From Setoptus koraiensis (lineage: Eukaryota; Animalia; Arthropoda), in contig CM106585.1 of NCBI GenBank assembly GCA_048013815.1, positions 16,678,001-16,742,000 on the forward strand: a stretch of DNA of 64,000 bases, given 5' to 3'. The notes under the pieces were generated by a model that worked only from the letters and a program-made list of their open reading frames with translations, made no database searches and was not told where the DNA came from. Both the position numbers and the translations under genes were made by a program. Position 1 is the stretch's first letter. Every line of letters begins with the position of its first letter. Below are positions 1 through 52,946 of the stretch, piece by piece.

Positions 1-1062
1 GGCCGGCTTTTGGCAGCAGCAGTTTCAGATAGTTAGTCAGACACTGACTGTTAGATGGTCAAGTGCAGGTCGGTGCTGTGAGGCTGGCTGCCCGGACACT
101 TGTGCCAGTGAGACAGACAACACAAATAACTAGCGATAGAAATAATATCCCGGGCCAGTGGTATTTGAATTGGAATTTTTCAATAGCTGATAGCTAATTC
201 GCAGCTCGCTAATAGAGCAACAACAGCCAAGCGATAGAGAATAAGAGGAGAAAAAAAAACATGTTAATCAGCGCGTCAGTTTGTGTCGTCGCCTGTCCAC
301 TATTCACGCCCATCTCACGTGAAATGACTTCACGTGAGATACAAATACAAATGCTTGCAGGGCTATTAGTGCCCCTACACACTTACACTAGCATGTAGCG
401 TATGTTGTTGTCGATGTGTTCGCCACGAGGATAATCGATTAGTTTGAACAATGGGGAATTAGTGCACACAATTGGAGAAACTGGATCAACGGCAACAGCA
501 GCAGCAGACACACAAAAAAGATTGATCTGAGAGAGCTGTTAAACGATTGGGCTGAGCCCGGCCGTCAGCCGGGCCAAGCCGAACGAGAGAACGTTGGTGA
601 CCTATGCCTCTTAGCAGTGATGGAATCCTAATGTCTCTCGAATGTCCGATGGAACAAGAGATCTCATCAAATACAAGACCAACTATCTGAGCTGGCGGAC
701 CCCACACTGGCGTAGGCGCGACGTGTGAGGTCCAGCCCACACAAAACAAGCGCTCTGTTTAATGGCAGCAACTCTAAACAACAAACACTAATCTTCTTTA
801 TCATGCATTCTTTTTTTCCTCTCTCTCTCCACAAATGATCCCTCTGTCCGCCTCCAATCAACGCTCAACAATGTAACCTGATGATATTTGTTGCCGAACC
901 CAACTCCCAATCCAATCACCACGCCTCGCACCTAAATCAATCAATCAACTTGCGGTGGTCAAATTTGTGTTTGCGTCCCTCGCACGGCACCAACGACGCC
1001 GACGACAACAACAACAACATCATCAACAACAACAACAACAAATTGCGTCAACGCGAAAACAG

Positions 1063-14400: not shown

Positions 14401-15773
14401 TCGTAGGCCACAATATTGATATACCTGTTCTTATGTTTATTCTCTGGCATCTGAGAGTGTTCACAACTTAGATTAAGATTGGTTGCTTTTTGAATTTGTT
14501 CGTATTCTCTAGAGAAGCCAATATCACCGTCAGCATGTAGTTTTTGAACGTGTTTCGACCATTCTGAAATTGGCGTAGATCCATAATCGCTATCATCGTA
14601 TGTTTCTGACAATTGTGGTGAATTGCCACGTGTTGCACTGGGTGGGTCATCTAGATAATAGTAGGCAGCCTGAAAGTATTTGCGCCACATTATAAATGAT
14701 ACAATAACCAGGGCAAGAGCAAATGAGGCGCATATGACTCCTACTAATAGGGATGCATTGAAAGTGTTGTCCATACTGGGATAGACAGTGTAACCTGTGA
14801 TAGTTGATATAATAGTAATGATTATAATAATAGATAATGCAGCAATAATGGTAATTACAAATGCAATCAACATGAACGAGTATGCAAATGGCAGATTTGA
14901 TGTAATAATGATGTGCGTTATGTAAGATTTGATTTTGCCTAGACTAAACGAGCGTTCTAAATCTAAATTCATATTGTTGTTATTATTATTGTTTCTAATT
15001 TGAATGGGATGATCTACGTTGACGTTATGCTGTCTTTGTTGTTGACTGAAGCAACTGTCCTGTTTCACATTTGATGCCTGCATCTGTGATGTGTGTTCTG
15101 GCGTGCAACAAAATTGTTGTGATTAATTTGCCGCACAATAACAGTGTCAAGCTGTGGCTTGCAGGGTCGTTTCAAGTGGTCCCTCAGACACGATTGTAAT
15201 GATAAAATATAATCAATAAAAATAAATAGTTCAATAGTGCCCGCGGTGTGCAGCTTACGAAATGTCCTGTCGAATTAAAAACAGAAATTCCGCCTGTCGA
15301 GTCAGCGCAGCCAATAAGATGCCATAATAATATTTTTTTGTCTATCTATTTGTTTGTAAATATTTTTTTCTCATAGATTTTCTCATGAATATTTTCAATA
15401 ATAATTAAGAAAATAATAAATAATAATCTAATGTAATTTATATCCTTTTCATCAAAAATAATACTTGTTGAGCCTGCTGAAAAGGTCCGAAAATTTACAG
15501 TAGGAATCCACTTGGTGTAAGTGTGTGTGTGCGTTGCCCCCTCTCTCCCCTGTGACTCAATTTTGATAATATGAGCATAACAATAGCTGATGCTAGAGGT
15601 TTTTCATTGCTTCTGCTGTTGCTTGTGTACGGCAGGGCGAGAGAAAGATTCGCTCATGACCGAACGAATGGCCTGTGTCCGAGTGGCCGAAGAATTTACG
15701 AGCGTCGAACTAACGCCAGTATAGGCAGCTCACAATTGGGAGATGGACGATCGAACTGCTGGCGAACCAAGTT

Positions 15774-15821
<48 letters not shown>

Positions 15822-18800
15822 GCTGCGAATGTGAGTCACACTCACAAATTGAACTGAGACGGGCGAACCAATTCATGTGTTGCACACACTCACTGTTGTG
15901 GAAAATGTGTGTACTATAGCATAGAATGAATGAATCAAACGCACCACCACCATGAAGAATTCGTGCATTCGCAGACAAACAAAGCCAGTGCGTGGAAGAT
16001 TTACAGGAACACACACATTCTTCATCTGGGCATTGTGTGCACTTTTTACTAGTTTCATGCCCGTAGTGCCAGAAAAATCCGCTTGGCAACCGAGATGCAC
16101 AGCTGTATTGTGTGCACCAGAGCGATGTCCGAGTAAATGTTTCTTTTTTCTTGCTGTTCGGCGTGCACACTTTGCGCGCTGTCTCGAACACAACAGGAAT
16201 GTTTCTGACGCTAGGTGCGCTGCACTTCTTGACTCATTCATCTGTCCGCTGCCTGCCTGCCTGCCAGACCGGAGATGGACAAATACTGCGTGCGCATAAA
16301 AGTCGGCGGCCACTGTCAACAGAATTCCTGTTCGAATCAGTCCAGATCCGATGGAAGCGCAGTTATCGTGGCAGAGCATGCACCCGAAAAGGCATCTTTT
16401 TTGCGCAAACTCAAACTTTAACATAATAGTTCAAACGTCCACCTATAGACGGCGCTAAAGTCCCTAAGATAGCGCACACCGTGTCATGATTGACGCATGG
16501 CTTCCTTCATGTTACATTGCACTTGTGTATCTCGTGTGGTGAATGCCGTACACATGATCATCTATGTCATAATAAAAATTGATTTCTCCACAATATTCAT
16601 GGATATTATTGTTCACAATTGATATTTACATTTGATTGCAACGTAATTTATATCATGAACTCTCCTACCATTATCCATGATTTTCCACCTATTTGTTCAT
16701 TCCATTTATGAGGAGTGTTTTATTAACAAGCCAGCCACAGTTGAAGAATCAATTGAGATCGGAGGCAGGCCTCTAATTTATGCTTAGAATTTAGGACAAC
16801 TTCAAATCGGACTGTCTCGCTATCACAACCTTTCATCTTATATCTCGTAGATAAAGAAGACTATATATCAGACATAGCCACCCATCTGACTACCTCTCAC
16901 TCAAGTGCACAGTCTGATTGTGATCGATCCAATATGGGCTTTACAACAACAACCCATAGGAAGCCTTTGCCCATAAGAACAACATATACCGCATCATTCT
17001 CAAACATTATATTATTTATCATTATTTTAAATGTCATCAGACAATCAGTGGATGCTCGGCAACAGTCAACTAGGTCCCTTATAGGTGTACCAATAGAAAG
17101 TAAGTATCACTCAGTGAATTTGGTCAATATGGAGTATGATCACTTATTTTTATATTTCAGACAATGACAATATTTATCCATTTATACATTCAATAACATC
17201 GAAAACTGTCCAGAGAGATCCTTCTACGAGATTGCCGATGACAACCAATTTAGATGTTTGGACGGGTCAGGAATAATACCATTTGACTTTGTAAATGATG
17301 ATTATTGTGACTGCAAAGACTCTAGTGATGAACCTGGCACATCAGCTTGCACCAATGGCCATTTCTATTGTGCTAACAATGAGTTCGTAGAGAAAATCAT
17401 TCCATCAGCATGGGTCAACGACGGACGGTGCGACTGCTGTGATACCACCGATGAATATAACTCTACAGCTAAATGTGAGAATAACTGCTATCAACTAGGC
17501 GAACATTTGAGGTTAGAACAACAGAGATTCAGGGATGTCGCCGAACAAGGATCATCCGTGAGAAACCAATATAAGGCAGAGGCCAAGCAGAAACGCGAAC
17601 AAAACACTCAACTGCTAGAGCAATTGAAGAGGGAATTGACTGACAAAGAGCAGTCAATAAGAAAATTGGAAGACGAACTGAATTTCGATTTCGGTCCTGA
17701 CGGTGTATTCATGCCCTTGAAAGGAAAATGTTTCAGTCATAATGATAGAGAATACACCTATACCTTCTGTCCATTTGAGCGCGCCACTCAGGAATCTCAA
17801 GGTGGCCTACAAACAGAGCTCGGTAGATGGGGCTCTTGGGTGGGTCCAGACAATGATGTTCACTCCAAGCAAAAATACGAAGGTGGCGTACAATGTTGGA
17901 ATGGTCCAGCCCGTAGCGTAGTCGTGAATTTTGCTTGTGGTGTTCAAGACCAGTTAGTAGATGTCTCTGAGCCAGCCAGATGCGAGTATATGTACGAATT
18001 TCAAACACCTGCCGCATGTCCAGATTTAAGTCCACCAGAGACCCCAGATGCAGCAGCTACTGATGTAAACCAACACCAGTCCCAACAACAAGAGCCTCAG
18101 ACGTCTCAACAAGAAAATCCGCTAGGGGAGCTGGAAGTTGAAGACAATCCAATTCACGAAATAGAAGATGTAGAGCACGAGGGGCATGATCACGGAGATT
18201 ATGTTGACGACCATGATGTGCCTGATCAGGAGGAATCGATTTCTACGCCGGCAGCTTCACAAGAGCACGACGAATTGTAATCAAAATGATGAATTGTGTT
18301 CCAAATACAGCACTTGATTGATTTTATATCTGGGTGTACAGCACTGTTTCTTTACACGCAGACTCACACACCATCACCTCACATAAAATTTGTCGTCGAT
18401 CGAATGGGTTTTGCGAATATTTACCAGCCTCAATAGTGAAGAGATCGCCATATATACATGAACCATTCGCATGGAGTTCAAGTCAGTTCAGTTTCTCTGT
18501 ATGTTTCTATGAATTTAGTTGTTTAGTCAGGCTAAAATCAAACTCTAACAACTTGCCACAACCAAGCTTTGTTGAATAAAAATGGCTACTTACTTTCGCA
18601 TTTGCTTTGCAGAATGACTTTCAATGGATCACTGAATTCACTTTTGAATAAATTCGAACTGTCGATGGTGCTTCGTGTGGCCGCCCTAACCTTGAGCTCA
18701 TAGAGCGAGTCTGCGGTTAAATTTGTCACCAGAAGCTGTATGTGATAAAAAACAATTGCAGGTGGGGCAGTCAGTTTTCTGTTTAGCAGCTATCATTGTT

Positions 18801-21800
18801 GACAAATTTTTTTGTCTGTTAGCAAAAACCTACCTCGTTGACAACCTTGTCCTTCTTTGCGCTCAAAGCAATCTCTTCGAAATTCCATTGACCGTCTAAT
18901 CTATAGTAAACAAAATAGTAGTCTATTTGATTGTAGAAAACTTGGGGCCTTTCCCACTGAAGAAATATACTGTCAGACGAGTAACAGGTTAGATTAACCA
19001 CTACTGGCGCCGACGGTGCCTGAACATCAGTGCGTATCTTGACCGGTGCACTTGACTCGCCTTGGAATTTTCTCGAATATGCTTGGATCCATAATTTATA
19101 ATGACTAAATGGCCTGAGTTCGCCAATAGTGTGCTCCATCACAGACTGAGGGTCACTCAATCGGCGCGTATCGTTGAGATTACGAACTAAATCTTGTAAA
19201 TAAATTTGATAGCCTTGTATGATTCCGTTCGGATATTTTGGTTCCAACCAACGCAATTTGACGCTAGTATCCATCACTCTGATGACACTCAGATTCGTTG
19301 GAGGACTAGAGACTGTTGTTGCGTCATTTTATTTTATTGTCATTATTGTTATCATTTTTGGAGATAAAGAGGGCGAGATAAATGTTGCGTGAGCATTAGA
19401 ACATAGTCATCATGAATAGTGGAACGGAAATGACAGTAAGGCGCGTAATGAGTCGAGCGACTTTAGAGCGTCGATGATTTGTGCCATGGTTGTACTACGG
19501 CTGGTCCACAATAGAGCAACGTAGCGTAATGAACTTTGCCTCTGAATAGAAATGAACCATATCGCACAAGTACATGGCGCGTATCTACACAAACAACTAT
19601 CAAATGTCAAGAGTTCCAGACAGCGAGATGATCAGGCCATGTCCAGTTGATGGCCGAGAACTACGCTTCCAGTTGTCAGTCAAGGTTCATTACTATAATA
19701 CTGTAGGGGATAATGATTTCAGTCTGGCCTATCGTTGGCTCGTATCTCTCTCCGTAGGCCTAAATCGCCAAGCAGAGCGACTGATTTAAATAGAGATTAT
19801 TTATCGCTCTCAACTGAGTTATTTATTTAAATTTAATTACATGACAAGTGTGTGTGCTTGAGCTCATATAAAACTATGAATGATCATCTTGGCATCACAA
19901 AAAGAAATATGTGGTCATGGCTAGGAGAACGATGATAGCAGGCCAATAACGAAATCATATCTGCACATCTACACAATTCTAAATTCAGGCGTTTTGTTTT
20001 TCGCTCTCGACTGTTGCATGGTGAAACTGCGGCCAGCAGAAGTTTATTTGTTCCGCATCATAAACATATTAATTAAAATATATTCATATGGACGACACAG
20101 CAACAATATCAACAATCAACTAAAATAACCATAGGCGCCACTTAATATACGTCGCCATCCCCGATTGGGGTTTATTTGCATAGCTCAAACGACCATGGAC
20201 ACAGACGATTGTAGCTGTTATGAGTTGCAATGGTGAATTTGTTCGAGCTAGACCACTAATCACCAAACACATCTATTGAATATATTGAATTATCATATAT
20301 GTAGTAGTGGCAACAACGATAATAATATTCAGCAGTTGCAACTAGCAGAATAGGTGCAACACTTCATCTTGGTTATAATCATAAACGTCAAGTGTAATTT
20401 ACTCAATCTCATTTATGATTTAGTGCTGCCAATACACACTTAAGTTCAACATGACCAGTTGAGATGGACTGTCCATAATTGAGTTTTAAACTTTTTCCTA
20501 CCAAACCATCTCTCTCTCTCTCTCTCTCTCTCCCTCTCTGCTGACTGCGTCCACTCACTCGATAATCAATTGGTACAGGTAGTATCTGCACCCTGCCGCA
20601 ACTACCTTTAGCTCTTGCCCAACTCCGATCAATCACACACTATTTAATAATATGGTCATCATTTGTATTAATTGTGAATGTGAGCCGACCATTATGCAAT
20701 GGCCATTTGAAAGCTATTGGGCAGTTAGGTTATTTTGATTTTTCAAACTTCCATCAAAACTTCACCAATTCACTAGTAACTTTTGACCATATCAACGACT
20801 CCCATCTCTTCAATTATTGTTAATGTTTATAAAAGTTCAACTCATGTCTTAATTAACCTCCTCAATTGTGGTCAGTCGCCATCTGTTTACACTATGCTAA
20901 TACATGCTAGTACATGTTATATTGATTTGCCAATGATTGCCCACTTACCGCCTTCGTCCGTCATCACAAGCACATTGCTTGAAGGTCCATCACCGGCCGG
21001 ATTGAAAACTTGTACTGAGAATAGATATTGTGTGAATGTTTCGAGATTCTTCACTACCAGTGACTGCAATTTTCGAAAGATAGCAATATTTCACATAGAA
21101 GAGAAAAAAAAATAACAGAATTAGCAAGAGGGTGATAGCAGAGTCAGATAGATAGAGTGAACAAGAGTGTAGCCATGATTGTCATACTAATCGGCGACTC
21201 ACCGTTTCTCTGTGATCGCCAACAATTAACTCTTTCGCTTGCGGCCCATTAATGTCAGGCTGTTGCACTTGATGCGTTGTTGATAAACCCTGGTGAGTTT
21301 GCTGTTGATTTTGGCCAAATGTGTTGAGACCATTCTCAGCGGCAGATGTAGCCCCGTTACTGCTATAGTTACCAGGTGTAAAAGAGGGCGCCGGTGTGGG
21401 TATTCTTGGCACATATCTGATGCGATAGCCTAGAAATTCGCCATGAATCTCTTTATGGGACGGAGGTAACCATTCTAATCTAATGGAATTGGAACTTATG
21501 TTGTGAGCACTCACAATGGTGGGCTTACCATCGGGTACTGATAGTTATTATCAGGTCAGGTTGTTATTGGGACAATTTATTGACACCGAATTGGTAATTA
21601 TTAGAAGATGTGGATATATTTTAGTATGCGTGCAGTCATTATGCGATCATGAGATAAGAGTTGACTTTACTTACTCTCGCGTAGTGTCATGAGATAGTAG
21701 GATTCTATGCTTGGTTCGCTAGCCCCAATTGAGTTGACAGCGGACACTCGAAATGAGTATGTGGTGAACGGCTTTAGGCCAATTATCTGATATTGTGTTC

Positions 21801-24800
21801 TGTTATCTGGCGTCATAATACCGTTTGCCACATCCCATGTGCCGTTCTCACCCTCTCTGTAGAACAAGAATGAGAGAATGAATAAAAAAAATGATGCGAT
21901 AAAATTAGTTGTTGTTAGCGAGAGAGATTAAAACCCTCATCAGAGATTAGTACTAATAAATAGTTTATGCTGTTACTTCAGATCCAGCTTCAGGGCAAAC
22001 AACACCATGATCACTTAGTGATAGTATTATCAGTTATTAGCTATGCTAACTAGACTACATTATTATCACTATCACTGACTATTTACCTGATATGTATGAT
22101 GTAATGTAGGATGGGAGAGTAATGGTAGTCGAAGCTGGGCGCCCAACTAATATTGACTGATCGCGAGGAGAAGCTCATAGTGATGGGCTTTTGGGGAGGA
22201 TCAGGAACATCTGTAGTGGTTGTTGTTGTTGTTGTTATGTTGCGAATTCATGTTAAATGGCGGCAACAACAGCAACAGGTTAACATAAGACATTATTGGT
22301 GTTGTTGCATAACGGTGATCAATCAGCCAAGGGAACAACAAGCAGTTCATTGGTGACCATAGATGATTGATCGACAGTTGTTGTCGATCATTGTCACGGT
22401 TAATATAAGTAATGTAATTTAGTAACAGTAGCAGTAGAAATGCAGAGGCGCGCCAGTACCAGTGGGGCCAAATAGTGAGATGAAACATCGAATGCGAGCA
22501 TCAATTATATTAATTGGGTGATGATGCCACGTTAATAGTGCCGTGTTGATTATCATTTTTCATTGTTGGTTGTGTTGCGTCAGACAAACAAAGGTTGTTG
22601 TTATCGATGGTGGCATCGGGCATCGGTAGTGGCGGTATGTTATGCAATTGGATGAGATAGCCATCGCACACACACACACACATGGAGATCACAGATGAAT
22701 ACCAATACCATGTATTAGTCGAATATAAGGCATAATGGTCGAAGAAAACGAATTGGAATAGAAGAAATAAGGTGTGGTTAGTAATTTGGTATTATATGTT
22801 TTCATAATCTCATAATCATCATCGTCATCGGCATCAACATCAGCATCTCTCTCCCTCTGTGTCGCTCTCTTTTGCCGTTGTGGTGGTATTCATTTAAATA
22901 TGATGATCTAATCAAATCAAATGAGTATGTTGGCCGTTACACTCCTAATGAGCCTTATCTTTACTACTAATGTTCTCATTTTGACGAAAAACTTTCCAGT
23001 TTTACTAAGTTGAGGGCTTTAGTTCTAGCCCATCTATTGGTTCTAATTACATGTTTCTTGTTTACGATTGCATCTAAAAATTAAGACTCCCCGTCAGCCT
23101 CTATTCTCTGGCCCAGTGGTGGCTTGTCTCTGTCGCTCCATGAATTAAGTCGACTTGATTCAAATGATGATAATTCTTTCTCTGTGTGTCTCTGTCTCTC
23201 TTTGTGAGCTTATCTTCACGATGATGAATCTGATTGTATCGACAAAAAGTCATGCCGGCCATGCGAACTTGTGTGTGCCGGTGTGTGCCTTATGGGCCAT
23301 AATTGGCAACGGCAGTTAAAATATTATATTGCACAAAGCCGCTTAAGAGAGCAATGTTACAACCAGGTAAAACGGGGTCTGTCTCGCTCTGGGCGTAAGG
23401 TTTTAGTCTGTTAGAGAGAATCTTCGGAACACATACACACAATTCTCTCTCGCTCTCTTTCTCTGTCCGCGAAATAGCGGCATCAGGCAACGGCATTCCA
23501 CTAGTGCCGGCTGCACTAAAGTATACATAATGAGCAACGAGACAAGACGAGACCGCAAACCCAAAATCGGCCACCATGACTAAAAGATTAGCCATTCGCT
23601 GCAGGTAATCCAAGCATACTAATGATGACATTCCTGTCTCGTTTCGTTTCGTTTCGGCTCGTCCCGTCCCGTCCTGTCCCGTCTCATCTCGTCCAATCTG
23701 CTCTGTCTCTCTGTATCAAACTGCGTGTCTGTGGCGTGCATTCTTTTCGCAAAACAACAACTGTTTAGCAATGATAATAGCCAGACAGTTGTATCAATTG
23801 ATGGTGCTGCTGCCGCTGCCTATAACGGGCCGTTCTTTTTTATTTATTGGTCATTATATTTGATGATACGAATGATCGAATTGCAACAATAACAATCTAT
23901 CTGAACCATCTGATAAATAGATTTTTTGCAAAGAAGAAAAAAGAACTTTCCATTTGCTCGCTCCATTGTACCTTGGCCAGTTCGGGCGGCTCATCCGTTT
24001 TAAGGCACGCAATTTGTCGCTCTATCTACAGCAACCTACACTGGCCGGTGTGACTATTTGGCTGTTGCTAATGAATTTTAGGTGCAACTACTCCTATTGA
24101 CCTACACACAAACAGCGACAGCTCAAGATGGACAGGCCGACACCAAGGCCGAGCTGGCATGTAGACGGGCCATTTCGAGCTGTCGTCTTTAATTTGAGCG
24201 ACTGGCAACAACAAAGAGCATTGTTGCGAGTTATGTTGCGTGTTGCCGTTTATAAGATTTGATTACATCTAAAAACCGTCGGACACGGATTCACCTCGCT
24301 CTCTCTCTCGCTGGCTGGCTGACTGGCTCTCGGGCTCCAAGATGGTCTCTGTTCGAAACGAACATAATCCAGCCAGAGCCGAGCGAAAGTTTATCAATAG
24401 AGAGATAACTATCAACAAGTCTTGCCAAATTGTTGCTGATGAATTGGCCGGCAAGAATGTGTTAATTGTTTTGTGTTTGAGTGCGTGTGTTTGTCGACCA
24501 TAACCAATGAGCTAATTAGTCGATATCGTGACTTTGCGCAACAAGAGACAGAGAGAGCGAGCTCAATTTGACCCCCAAATTGAGCGGTCAAATGCTGTTG
24601 CGAAGAAACAAAACTCATGGTATTGGCCATTGCGTTGGTTGGCCAATTTTAGACAACAAGTGACTGTTGTGAGAGTGTGTCTCGTTTGTTATTGCTAAGC
24701 GCAAGCAATTATCTCTTGCCAGAGCAACTTGTCTTCGAGAATCTCTCTCAGTCTCGCTCTCTGTCTCTGTTTGCCAACTACAAGTGGAAGGCCAATAGTC

Positions 24801-31900: not shown

Positions 31901-32626
31901 AGACAGGGCAGCGTTCCATTGGAGCCCTTCCTGATGTAGAAGGTCTCCACGTCTGCAATTGGGATGACGATTAAGTTGAGTATTTTGTTAGTGACATATG
32001 AGTATTTGTTCTGTTTGTTTGCACGGCCGGCAACGGGCACCGGACTGGTATCAATTTGTACACGGATGGCAATGCCAATTTGTGTACGAATGATAGTGCC
32101 AATTTGTATTGGATGAGAGTGTGGTCAGTTTGTGCTTACCCGACGACTGGGCCCCGTCCGAGGAGCTCACGAGCTGGTAGGCCGACGATTCTGGTGACGC
32201 TTGATTTTGGAGGAGCGCGCTGGAGGAGCTTGGCGTGAGCGCAACAACAACACTGCACAGGAGGACTAGAAATTGAATTGACACTTTTGTTTGGAGGCGG
32301 CTGACATTGAATTCGTGATTGAAATTGAAATTAAAATTATTCACAATTTTATTTTTATCCGATATTCTCGATGGCTTGATTCGATTCGATTGACCGTGCA
32401 ACGCGGCTTGGCGCGCACACATGACGGCGGCCGGGGGTTTTCTTCGCGCCGACTTGATGTCGTCGAACAATCTTCTTCTATGGTGGACACATGGGGCGAC
32501 ACATTCGTTTGTGGTCGCTGTTCGATGGCTGCTTGTCTTCTTATTATTATAATTACTATTAATATTATTATTATTATTATTATCACCGTCTTGAGTGTTT
32601 GGATCATTCATTTTTCGTCTCTTCAT
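11417..32626 (-). CDS. Ptp99A: Receptor-type protein tyrosine phosphatase, Ptp99A/PTPRG-like (signal peptide, 1 Ig, 4 FN3, TM, active D1, degenerate D2), about 1522 aa, 14 exons
   Basis: Hand-built exons (minus strand): 32626-32140, 31952-31834, 31582-31405, 22210-22087, 21856-21675, 21537-21203, 21063-20949, 19312-18834, 18735-18594, 14794-14322, 14215-14081, 13429-13295, 13186-13013, 12907-11417. All introns are GT-AG and phase-compatible, totalling 4569 nt. Motifs: Ig (LPC...IEWYK...DSGEYHC), FN3 (DVPDPP..SWAP; IRLEWLPP; VKLRWLEP; FLQWERP), TM ([22 protein letters not shown]), D1 ([52 protein letters not shown]) and D2 with Cys replaced by Asp (VVDRFGG), typical of Ptp99A/PTPRG/PTPRZ. The start ATG is uncertain: the first ATG is at 32626 and the hydrophobic signal-like stretch lies about 115 aa later. 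Confidence 0.93.
16934..18280 (+). CDS. PRKCSH: Glucosidase II beta subunit (PRKCSH/80K-H), about 410 aa, nested antisense in a Ptp99A intron; exons 16934-17099 and 17214-18280
   Basis: Signal peptide, then splice A|GTAAGT...CCAG|AG giving [39 protein letters not shown] (G2B domain), an MRH domain (DFGPDG...EYTYTFCPF...CWNGPARS...EPARCEY...TPAAC) and C-terminal HDEL. The alternative acceptor at 17160 is excluded because the MRH-coding frame has a TGA at 17165-17167 and other frames also hit stops. Confidence 0.93.
29409..30327 (+). CDS. Uncharacterised secreted prepro-protein, about 223 aa, nested antisense in the 9.2-kb Ptp99A intron; exons 29409-29857 and 30105-30327
   Basis: Hydrophobic signal peptide ([23 protein letters not shown]) followed by an Asp/Glu-rich pro-region. 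Donor AG|GTGAGT at 29857/29858 (phase 2) joins TGTAG|A at 30104/30105 in frame with ORF 30112-30327. The product has two RxRR sites and a basic C-terminal peptide ending in Gly-stop. Confidence 0.75.
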
Positions 32627-32635
32627 TTTGGGCCG

Positions 32636-32695
32636 ACGGTCGAACTGTTTCACTCGACGGTCGAACTGTTCACTCGACTATCGAACTGTTTCGCT
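32636..32695. repeat. About 20-21-bp tandem repeat, 3 copies (CGACGGTCGAACTGTTTCACT)
   Basis: Seen directly, immediately 5' of the first Ptp99A ATG. Confidence 0.75.
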
Positions 32696-32832
32696 GGTCG
32701 TTCGATGCTTTCACTGGATGCTGCAACCAACTGGCTGCTTGCGCCCGCGACAATGGCTGCTGTCGACTAACGCTGCTGCTATTGTGTCACTGGCGTCTTC
32801 GGACGGCCAGCCATTGCTCTGCTGTTTGGGTT

Positions 32833-51700: not shown

Positions 51701-52504
51701 ATGGAACGGAAAAATCACGGCCAGGCGAGGCTCGTTATCGAGCTAGTATGGTATAGCTGAGTTGCTTAAATGCAATTTTAAGTCGAATTAAGATGCAAGT
51801 GAGAAACGTTATAGACGATCTTGAGTAACAAAAGTTTTCTTCTAATTCTGTTTGTTGTTAAAATATTGAGTGAAAGTATTACAAGCTTGGCAACATCAGG
51901 AAAAACGCAGCTACACGCCAAGGTGCTGCAAAAAAAAGAATGTATGAGCGATGTTTGAGCGTTCATAAGTGTATTTTTCAGCCGTTTACACCTTGTCAAA
52001 GAAAAATTATGGGTGAAGCGTTGAGTCGATCTCCCATTATAATCTTGATAGAGGCTTGTAGTATATCTGAGTGACCGCCATTAACAGGTGACATTGACCT
52101 TGATAATGGACGGCGGACAATCAACGGCTATAGAAGCGCAAGATAGATTCCAGCCGAAGGTATATTTATTTGCGAGCCAAGTTGAATGAGAAGAAAGAAA
52201 GGCAGCATTACGAGAAACAAAGAGAGAGAGAGAGAGAAAGAGACTTATCTGTCTTAGTTTTTGCTGGTGTGTAGCAAGAGAATGTATAGTTAGTTGTATT
52301 GTAGTATAATTGTGCTGCCTGATAGTTGGTAACGAGAATTGAACTAGAAACGATGGAGCGTGATTGTAAAAACATGATGATATTAATAATAATCTAATCT
52401 GTTTTTCTCTCTTATGACTAATTCTCTCTCTCCCAAAAACTCCATTTTCTCCTGCGTTCATTGTGTCCCTGATTGCCACTGAATCTTACGTAATCCATCC
52501 GTCG

Positions 52505-52543
<39 letters not shown>

Positions 52544-52946
52544 CACACAATCAACTACATGAAAACAACATTCACTGCGACAACAACAACGAACAAAAAA
52601 ATATTGAAATGCTCGCTCAAATTGAAAAACGCTGCTGGCGTTCGTTCATCATGCTTGATGATATCTGAACAACCGCCGATTGGAACTTGCTGAAATGGTT
52701 CTCTCGCTGCCAACAACAACGTTAACAACAACAACAACGTTAACAACAACGACAACGTTAACCACAACAGGTGAGAAGCCATATAAATGTACGTGGGATG
52801 GATGCAGTTGGAGTTTTGCTAGATCAGACGAACTAACTCGCCACTTTAGGAAACACACAGGATTGAAACCATTCAAGTGCAATCATTGCGAACGATGCTT
52901 CTCTCGCTCTGACCATCTCGCTCTACATATGAAGAGACACCAATAG
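48729..52946 (+). CDS. luna: Kruppel-like factor, KLF6/7 (Luna) orthologue, about 829 aa; exons 48729-51042 and 52771-52946
   Basis: The N-terminal acidic motif [19 protein letters not shown]...[17 protein letters not shown] matches the KLF6/7 N-terminus. Three C2H2 fingers ([25 protein letters not shown]|[56 protein letters not shown]) are joined by a phase-1 GT-AG intron at 51043-52770. Confidence 0.93.

Follow-up and report, generated by a model that had tools for sequence, protein, structure and literature searches.

A 596-nucleotide AG exclusion zone with a predicted distant branch point precedes a Ptp99A-type phosphatase exon in a mite-like arthropod

In a 64,000-nucleotide stretch of DNA from contig CM106585.1 (the whole of which is referred to here as the window), a 9.2-kb intron of a Ptp99A-type receptor tyrosine phosphatase gene ends, on the minus strand, at a 3' splice site that is preceded by 596 nucleotides (nt) without a single AG dinucleotide. 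We consider it probable that a distant branch point about 567 nt upstream, together with the pyrimidine tract that adjoins it, defines the 3' end of this intron, that the first AG downstream is taken, and that AGs have been purged from the sequence in between. The 3' end would be recognised through a UACUAAC sequence (branch A at 22778) and the tract directly next to it, and the first step of splicing would not depend on the 3' AG. In the second step, the spliceosome would take the first AG past the branch, the CAG at 22213-22211, and any AG arising between branch and exon would act as a premature 3' splice site and be removed by selection, the outcome being a 596-nt AG exclusion zone in a sequence that would otherwise drift close to neutrally. 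The initial annotation of the window had proposed this combination of a distant branch point with use of the first AG, and the proposal is supported by indirect tests (signals that are unique in the interval, a normal AG content upstream of it, and an AG-free zone in a sister species).

The zone extends over positions 22213 to 22808 of the minus strand. On the plus strand, where an AG of the pre-mRNA reads as CT, this dinucleotide is found at 22211-22212 and next at 22809-22810, so that the run has exactly the limits first given for it, and none of its 84 plus-strand C residues stands before a T. The number of CTs expected had been put at about 37 from a uniform frequency of 1/16, which is too high: local composition predicts 24.8 and the window-wide frequency about 32. 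Among 20,000 mononucleotide shuffles of the zone the count was always at least 10 (P(0) ~1.7e-11). CT-free runs of similar length are not common in matched sequence, a question raised with the initial annotation: the next-longest in the window measures 195 nt, and AG-free runs of at least 250 nt number 4 in the window against 0.01 per window in block-wise first-order Markov simulations. Chance is excluded as the origin of the zone.

An alternative, which we regard as very improbable, is that a conventional proximal branch at the UUUAAC found at -42 serves the acceptor together with an A/C-rich tract, and that the AG-free run results from composition, mutation bias, or an RNA or DNA element. 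Of the 16 dinucleotides counted in the pre-mRNA sense, only AG is absent (0 against 23-25 expected) and G is never preceded by A, while the other 15 are near expectation, among them CT (31 against 38) and GA (18 against 23). Because the other dinucleotides, unlike AG itself, are near normal, composition and mutation bias are disfavoured as causes. AG-free zones that are by-products of repeats have been published (PMC1431707), which lends the proximal branch some support; against this, the zone here is unique sequence with only about 9% simple repeat, some 51 of its 596 nt being made up of (GTT)6, (CA)8 and short homopolymers, and the first description of much of it as ordinary mixed sequence holds. 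The repeat-derived by-product class was rejected for this locus on the 51 of 596 nt of repeat, the lack of any other copy in the window, the lack of a proximal tract, and the retention of the zone in the sister species. An origin from a repeat, a transposon, or a known RNA family was also rejected, since no second copy of the zone was found within the window and no match to it was found in Rfam.

The upstream limit of the zone is abrupt. Its 5' edge is the first AG upstream, at 22809-22810 on the minus strand, beyond which AG density is normal: the first gaps between successive AGs measure 36, 0, 0, 2, 0, and 6 nt, and the next 300 nt hold 30 AGs where 26.6 are expected. Directly beyond the edge, at 22811-22870 (minus strand), a (GAU)n-like repeat of acidic codons and a GA-rich stretch carry nine AGs in about 60 nt, which makes the edge very sharp.

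The signals expected of a distant branch point lie just inside this edge. A UACUAAC branch-site consensus (GTTAGTA on the plus strand) occupies 22777-22783 on the minus strand, 26 nt inside the edge, its predicted branch A lying about 567 nt upstream of the acceptor G and the consensus itself 8.6 kb from the 5' splice site; TACTAAC occurs once only in the 700 nt upstream of the acceptor. Directly downstream of it is a pyrimidine tract of about 38 nt (22739-22776, minus strand; -565 to -528), and a scan of the same 700 nt placed every 20-nt segment with at least 16 pyrimidines within -565 to -528 and none in the last 500 nt. A second candidate branch site, GACUAAU (ATTAGTC on the plus strand), at 22714-22720 (minus strand; -504), has no strong tract adjoining it and is not kept in the sister species. 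No pyrimidine tract was found in the last 110 nt before the exon. Instead, the AG is preceded by an A/C-rich (AAC)n tail at 22213-22243 (minus strand), which contains (AAC)6, read as (GTT)6 at 22219-22236 on the plus strand, and which ends in (AAC)n-CCACUACAG. The two motifs, the tract after the first of them, and the (AAC)n sequence in place of a tract before the AG had all been picked out correctly at the initial annotation. Two aspects of this layout tell against a conventional proximal branch: a branch at -42 would have no pyrimidine tract between it and the AG, and a perfect branch site with its tract lies 26 nt inside the sharp 5' edge of the zone. The (AAC)n stretch would stand in for the usual pyrimidine tract and may be a poorly structured spacer free of AG. 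CAA repeats are generally poorly structured, and for this reason we offer the speculation that the CAA-rich tail is a means of presenting the acceptor on unstructured, AG-free RNA.

The strongest support for the predicted distant branch is that the AG-free state is shared with a sister species. This one close relative is represented by a Logan contig (L001) that was found through an open reading frame (ORF) of GCS2-beta, a gene nested within the phosphatase gene, and that aligns to positions 16630-22710 of the window, introns included, at 80.5% identity. In L001 there is no AG in the 511 nt between the orthologous acceptor and the contig end, where 22 would be expected from composition. The zone takes up 521 columns of the alignment at 85.1% identity, with 78 substitutions and 60 indel columns between the two sequences (the (AAC)n repeat, for one, is 9 nt shorter in L001), and the splice-site AG is the only one in it. 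When the same spectrum of substitutions was placed at random sites, 7.45 AGs arose on average and none in 0.02% of trials (P(0)=0.0002). The other introns of the same alignment, used as a control (2466 columns, 82.7% identity), contain 86 AGs common to both sequences, 43 found in the window only, and 45 found in L001 only; at this rate the zone would hold about 27 AGs per species, and 18.5 lineage-specific ones (Poisson P=9e-9). When only the stretch upstream of -118 is considered, which lies beyond a conserved CUGAU at -111, the absence of AG has a P of 7e-7. The zone drifts at roughly the neutral intronic rate, with AG alone not tolerated, to at least -511. Because AG is avoided as far as -511 in both species, an active branch would be needed upstream of that point, and a constraint of this reach is not easily squared with a branch at -42 or -111. 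The conservation of UUUAAC at -42 in L001 is in favour of a proximal branch, which would nevertheless have to accommodate a sequence that evolves at a neutral rate and has gained no AG in either lineage.

The same comparison bears on the explanation that several branch points are spread across the zone, at -567, -368, and -111, with UACUAAC one among them or a minor one, and with the uppermost active branch setting the zone. The two internal candidates are CUGAC at 22579-22583 (minus strand; -368), which is CUGAU in L001 and has no tract after it, and CUGAU at 22322-22326 (minus strand; -111), which is followed by a U/G-rich stretch and is conserved in L001. That both are retained as CTRAY in L001 fits this explanation, and multiple distant branch points have been documented for human HTR4 exons (cited in PMC7969005). 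However, there is no strong pyrimidine tract after either of these internal motifs, and the avoidance of AG to at least -511 in both species demands an active branch further upstream than either. We consider the use of several branch points unlikely.

The acceptor itself is identified through homology. Its AG (A at 22212, G at 22211, minus strand) stands in the context CACUACAG before the junction and AUGUUCC after it. The gene is, by protein homology, a Ptp99A-type receptor tyrosine phosphatase, the name Ptp99A being an orthology label: identity is about 50% to chelicerate orthologues and about 42% to fly Ptp99A. An identity to the fly protein of only about 42% means that the host genome is not that of Drosophila, and the host is a mite-like, probably acariform, arthropod. 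The label had been attached at the initial annotation and is borne out by more than 60 Ptp99A orthologues whose tblastn alignments all begin at 22211, and in the best homologues, P0154 for one, residues 121 and 122 bridge 31406 and 22211 with no residue missing. The orthologous exon was located in 10 other arthropod contigs (nine, and one from Blomia, L008), in each of which an AG stands exactly 2 nt before the V codon; because this position is common to the ten contigs, the intron position is ancient. In a spider locus (L007) the orthologous exon was not included.

The exon that follows the acceptor (22088-22210, minus strand) is 123 nt long and of phase 1, codes for the beginning of the first FN3 domain, (D)VPDPPQKP...HYIIHI, shares 52-74% identity with the matching segment of arthropod Ptp99A orthologues, and has its own donor, GTAAAT, at 22087. 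Upstream, the 5' splice site GT of the intron lies at 31404-31403 on the minus strand, with CAGG before the junction and gtaagtgac after it, and gives an intron length of 9194 nt, in agreement with the 9.2 kb first stated; the spliced junction is in frame and reads Q-D-V-P-D-P-P. Skipping of the 123-nt exon would keep the frame and lose half of an FN3 domain, and the exon looks constitutive. The possibility that exon coding continues into the zone was rejected, as there is an in-frame stop 9 codons upstream and no ORF is listed in that frame. It is exceedingly improbable, in our judgement, that the acceptor is unreal or unused, through a wrong gene model or an assembly artefact, and that the AG-free run is unrelated to splicing. 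The lack of transcript support speaks for such an error; against it stand an exon that resembles its orthologues this closely and is in frame with the upstream Ig exon, canonical GT and AG dinucleotides, an intron position shared with 10 other arthropod contigs, and a matching structure in the independent assembly of the sister species. Other introns of the same gene (for example those before 21857 and 21064) have CTAAY branch sites and U-rich tracts close to the AG, and from these ordinary signals it follows that the basic splicing signals of the organism are conventional.

Several points weigh against the distant branch proposed here. Of four RNA runs (two of raw reads, two of contigs that contain part of the gene), none had a read or contig, and thus a junction or lariat, placed on 20900-24400, so that the acceptor and the branch are predicted rather than proven to be used; the species named on the label of such runs may differ from the organism of the window. 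The sister contig stops about 55 nt short of TACTAAC, so that support for the branch site and its tract comes from the window, and an exact 24-mer scan of metagenome contigs gave no match that would continue L001 past its end. Weak proximal candidates are present, namely UUUAAC at -42 and CUGAU at -111, and L001 keeps both. Distant branch points that have been mapped experimentally lie within 100-400 nt (cited in PMC1431707), a range that 567 nt exceeds, and modelling predicts no significant structure that would shorten the path from branch to AG, the predicted minimum free energy (MFE) of the interval being -114 kcal/mol against -108 +/- 6 for shuffled sequences (z=-0.98; the two sequences available give no covariation power). 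Our observations comprise the AG-free zone and its edges, the positions of the motifs, and the avoidance of AG in two species; we infer which adenosine branches and that the search for the AG is linear.

At the same acceptor, more distant relatives look different. Blomia tropicalis (L008) has 119 nt without AG, together with a U-rich tract and a UUCUAAC at about -42, eight other arthropod contigs have AG-free stretches of 19-50 nt, and a Dermatophagoides-like contig (L015), from an AT-rich and AG-poor genome, has 199 nt free of AG with UACUAAU at -53 and a strong tract. The last of these combines a long AG-free stretch with a conventional branch site, a combination that favours the idea of a proximal branch in the window as well. 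Since distant relatives have conventional branch sites and zones of 19-199 nt, the distant layout would be confined to the lineage that comprises the window host and its sister.

The locus belongs, as judged from its sequence, to the known class of acceptors with an AG exclusion zone and a distant branch point, and it carries all the sequence features that define this class (Gooding et al., 2006; PMC1431707). Such acceptors are established but rare in vertebrates, mostly associated with regulated exons, and mapped by experiment to distances of about 400 nt. PMC1431707 also sets out the scanning model (Smith et al., 1989; Smith et al., 1993), in which the first step is independent of the AG, the first downstream AG is used, and inserted AGs are captured. 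The closest known parallel is exon 11 of the PTB gene. In human PTBP1 the AG-free zone of this exon is 380 nt long, with a branch at -351 verified by mutagenesis, and in Fugu it is 590 nt long with a predicted branch at -566 (PMC1431707). There, as here, a long zone abuts the acceptor, a perfect heptamer with an adjoining tract marks its 5' end, and candidate proximal branch sites appear irrelevant; the dimensions of the Fugu case are almost identical to ours, and the two share the status of predictions. The PTB exon differs in being a regulated cassette exon with PTB-binding elements in its zone, whereas the acceptor here precedes an apparently constitutive half-FN3 exon. The branch points of alpha-tropomyosin exon 3 and GABBR1 exon 23, at about -175 and -275 (PMC1431707), likewise combine an anchoring branch site and tract with selection against AG; the distance here is predicted from sequence and is two to three times as great, and mixed sequence takes the place of a long pyrimidine tract as the spacer.

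Other comparisons are instructive mainly for their differences. The megaPPT of vertebrate OGDH exons 4a and 4b (PMC7969005) resembles the present zone in being AG-free across species with interrupting AGs purged, but it enforces mutually exclusive exons and consists largely of one long tract, while here there is a tract of about 38 nt, a 9.2-kb intron, and no exon pair. A megaPPT arrangement was rejected for this locus on the length of the tract (about 38 nt) and the 8.6 kb between branch and 5' splice site. An intron of human PTPRS has an AG-free zone of 1126 nt with several candidate distant branch sites, against 229 nt in the mouse orthologue (PMC1431707); it too lies in a receptor tyrosine phosphatase gene, though of another subfamily and at another intron, and no evidence indicates that the feature shares descent. 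In yeast COF1 (PMC3239191) the first suitable AG past a strict UACUAAC is also reached over an unusually long distance, but there a stable stem shortens the effective distance, whereas the folding predicted here does not improve on shuffled sequence (z=-0.98). The initial annotation had called the zone longer than well-known mammalian cases, which is true beside PTBP1 exon 11 and alpha-tropomyosin; a claim to exceed all published cases would not hold beside the predictions for Fugu PTB (590 nt) and human PTPRS (1126 nt). The only Drosophila exons for which long AG exclusion zones have been noted are eMIC-dependent microexons (PMC8797185), and among the papers searched we found none on AG exclusion zones in mites, other chelicerates, or arthropods beyond these Drosophila microexons.

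The layout of the 22211 acceptor recurs at two other predicted acceptors within the window, in which both strands were scanned for AG-free runs of at least 140 nt. The first is preceded by a zone of 410 nt (52359-52768, plus strand), which opens with CUAAU, GACUAAU, and a long tract of C and U, continues as (CA)n and (CAA)n, and closes with AACCACAACAG; downstream of it is the last exon of a KLF (luna-like) gene, which encodes the final two zinc fingers (GEKPYKC...HMKRHQ, then stop). The second has a zone of 292 nt (769-1060, plus strand), in which CACUAAU and a C/U tract come first and a (CAA)n tail leads up to the AG at 1061-1062; the putative exon after it has an ORF, ARAKCGRN..., with no recognised homology. 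The layout is found in smaller form, with zones of 146 and 141 nt, before the exons at 19313 and 31583 respectively, and at the former the additional AGs of the sister species all lie upstream of that species' own branch site and tract, as the scanning model predicts. Over ten acceptors of the phosphatase gene the AG-free stretches measure 56, 141, 596, 77, 125, 121, 146, 41, 142, and 47 nt; the median, about 120 nt, is clearly longer than the 19-50 nt found at the orthologous site in other arthropods.

A broader reading of this recurrence, which we entertain tentatively and with somewhat more doubt than conviction, is a lineage-wide shift in 3' splice-site recognition in the window host and its sister, in which many introns, including those before constitutive exons, have CTAAY and its tract hundreds of nt (300-950) away from the exon. 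The AG would then be found by a long-range search, typically on an unstructured CAA-rich tail, in an arrangement not shared by related soil arthropods or by astigmatid mites.

Further AG-free runs and acceptors in the window are recorded here as observations in their own right. CAA/AAC-rich tails (…AACAACAG) take the place of a pyrimidine tract at the acceptors at 22211, 19313, 52770, 1062, and 23768. Within the 9.2-kb intron, on the opposite strand, a 152-nt AG-free run (23615-23766, plus strand) opens with CAUACUAAU and a C/U tract of 90 nt, closes with AACAACUGUUUAG, and may be the acceptor of a nested plus-strand gene. A possible acceptor at 14795 (minus strand), before the exon for the transmembrane region, reads …CUAUCACAG before the junction and GUUACAC after it and follows 142 nt that are free of AG and hold neither a CTRAY nor a pyrimidine tract; the ORF runs on upstream, leaving the exon boundary uncertain. 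At 32297-32808 (plus strand), AG-free runs of 297 and 213 nt are separated by one AG and lie opposite a putative signal-peptide region upstream of the Ig exon, with no clear branch site and tract at their head and no known plus-strand exon.

The gene through which the sister contig was found is that for the glucosidase II beta subunit (PRKCSH; GCS2-beta), whose large exon at 17258-18280 (plus strand; 803-1708 in L001) is nested on the opposite strand in an intron of the phosphatase gene. Its closest named relatives are astigmatid mites, at 58-60% identity; the protein searches brought up no annotated protein from the host genome itself. The nesting is kept in the sister species, while relatives at 58-64% protein identity (L002, L005) have other neighbours; over the GCS2-beta loci of distant relatives (L002-L006), where neighbours differ, no AG-free run exceeds about 120 nt.

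What is unusual about the acceptor described here is the arthropod taxon in which it occurs, the apparently constitutive exon that it precedes, the mixed sequence of its spacer, its CAA-rich context, and its recurrence. Acceptors of this kind will probably be mis-called by gene predictors that have learned to expect a pyrimidine tract at the AG. If lariat mapping confirms the distant branch, this genome would allow a genome-wide test of how far the second step can search and by what mechanism it finds the 3' AG, of what replaces the pyrimidine tract, and of changes in the factors that enable this. Were the lineage-wide shift to prove true, the scanning range of the second step in these arthropods would lie far beyond that of any metazoan studied, possibly owing to changes in U2AF35 or in second-step factors.

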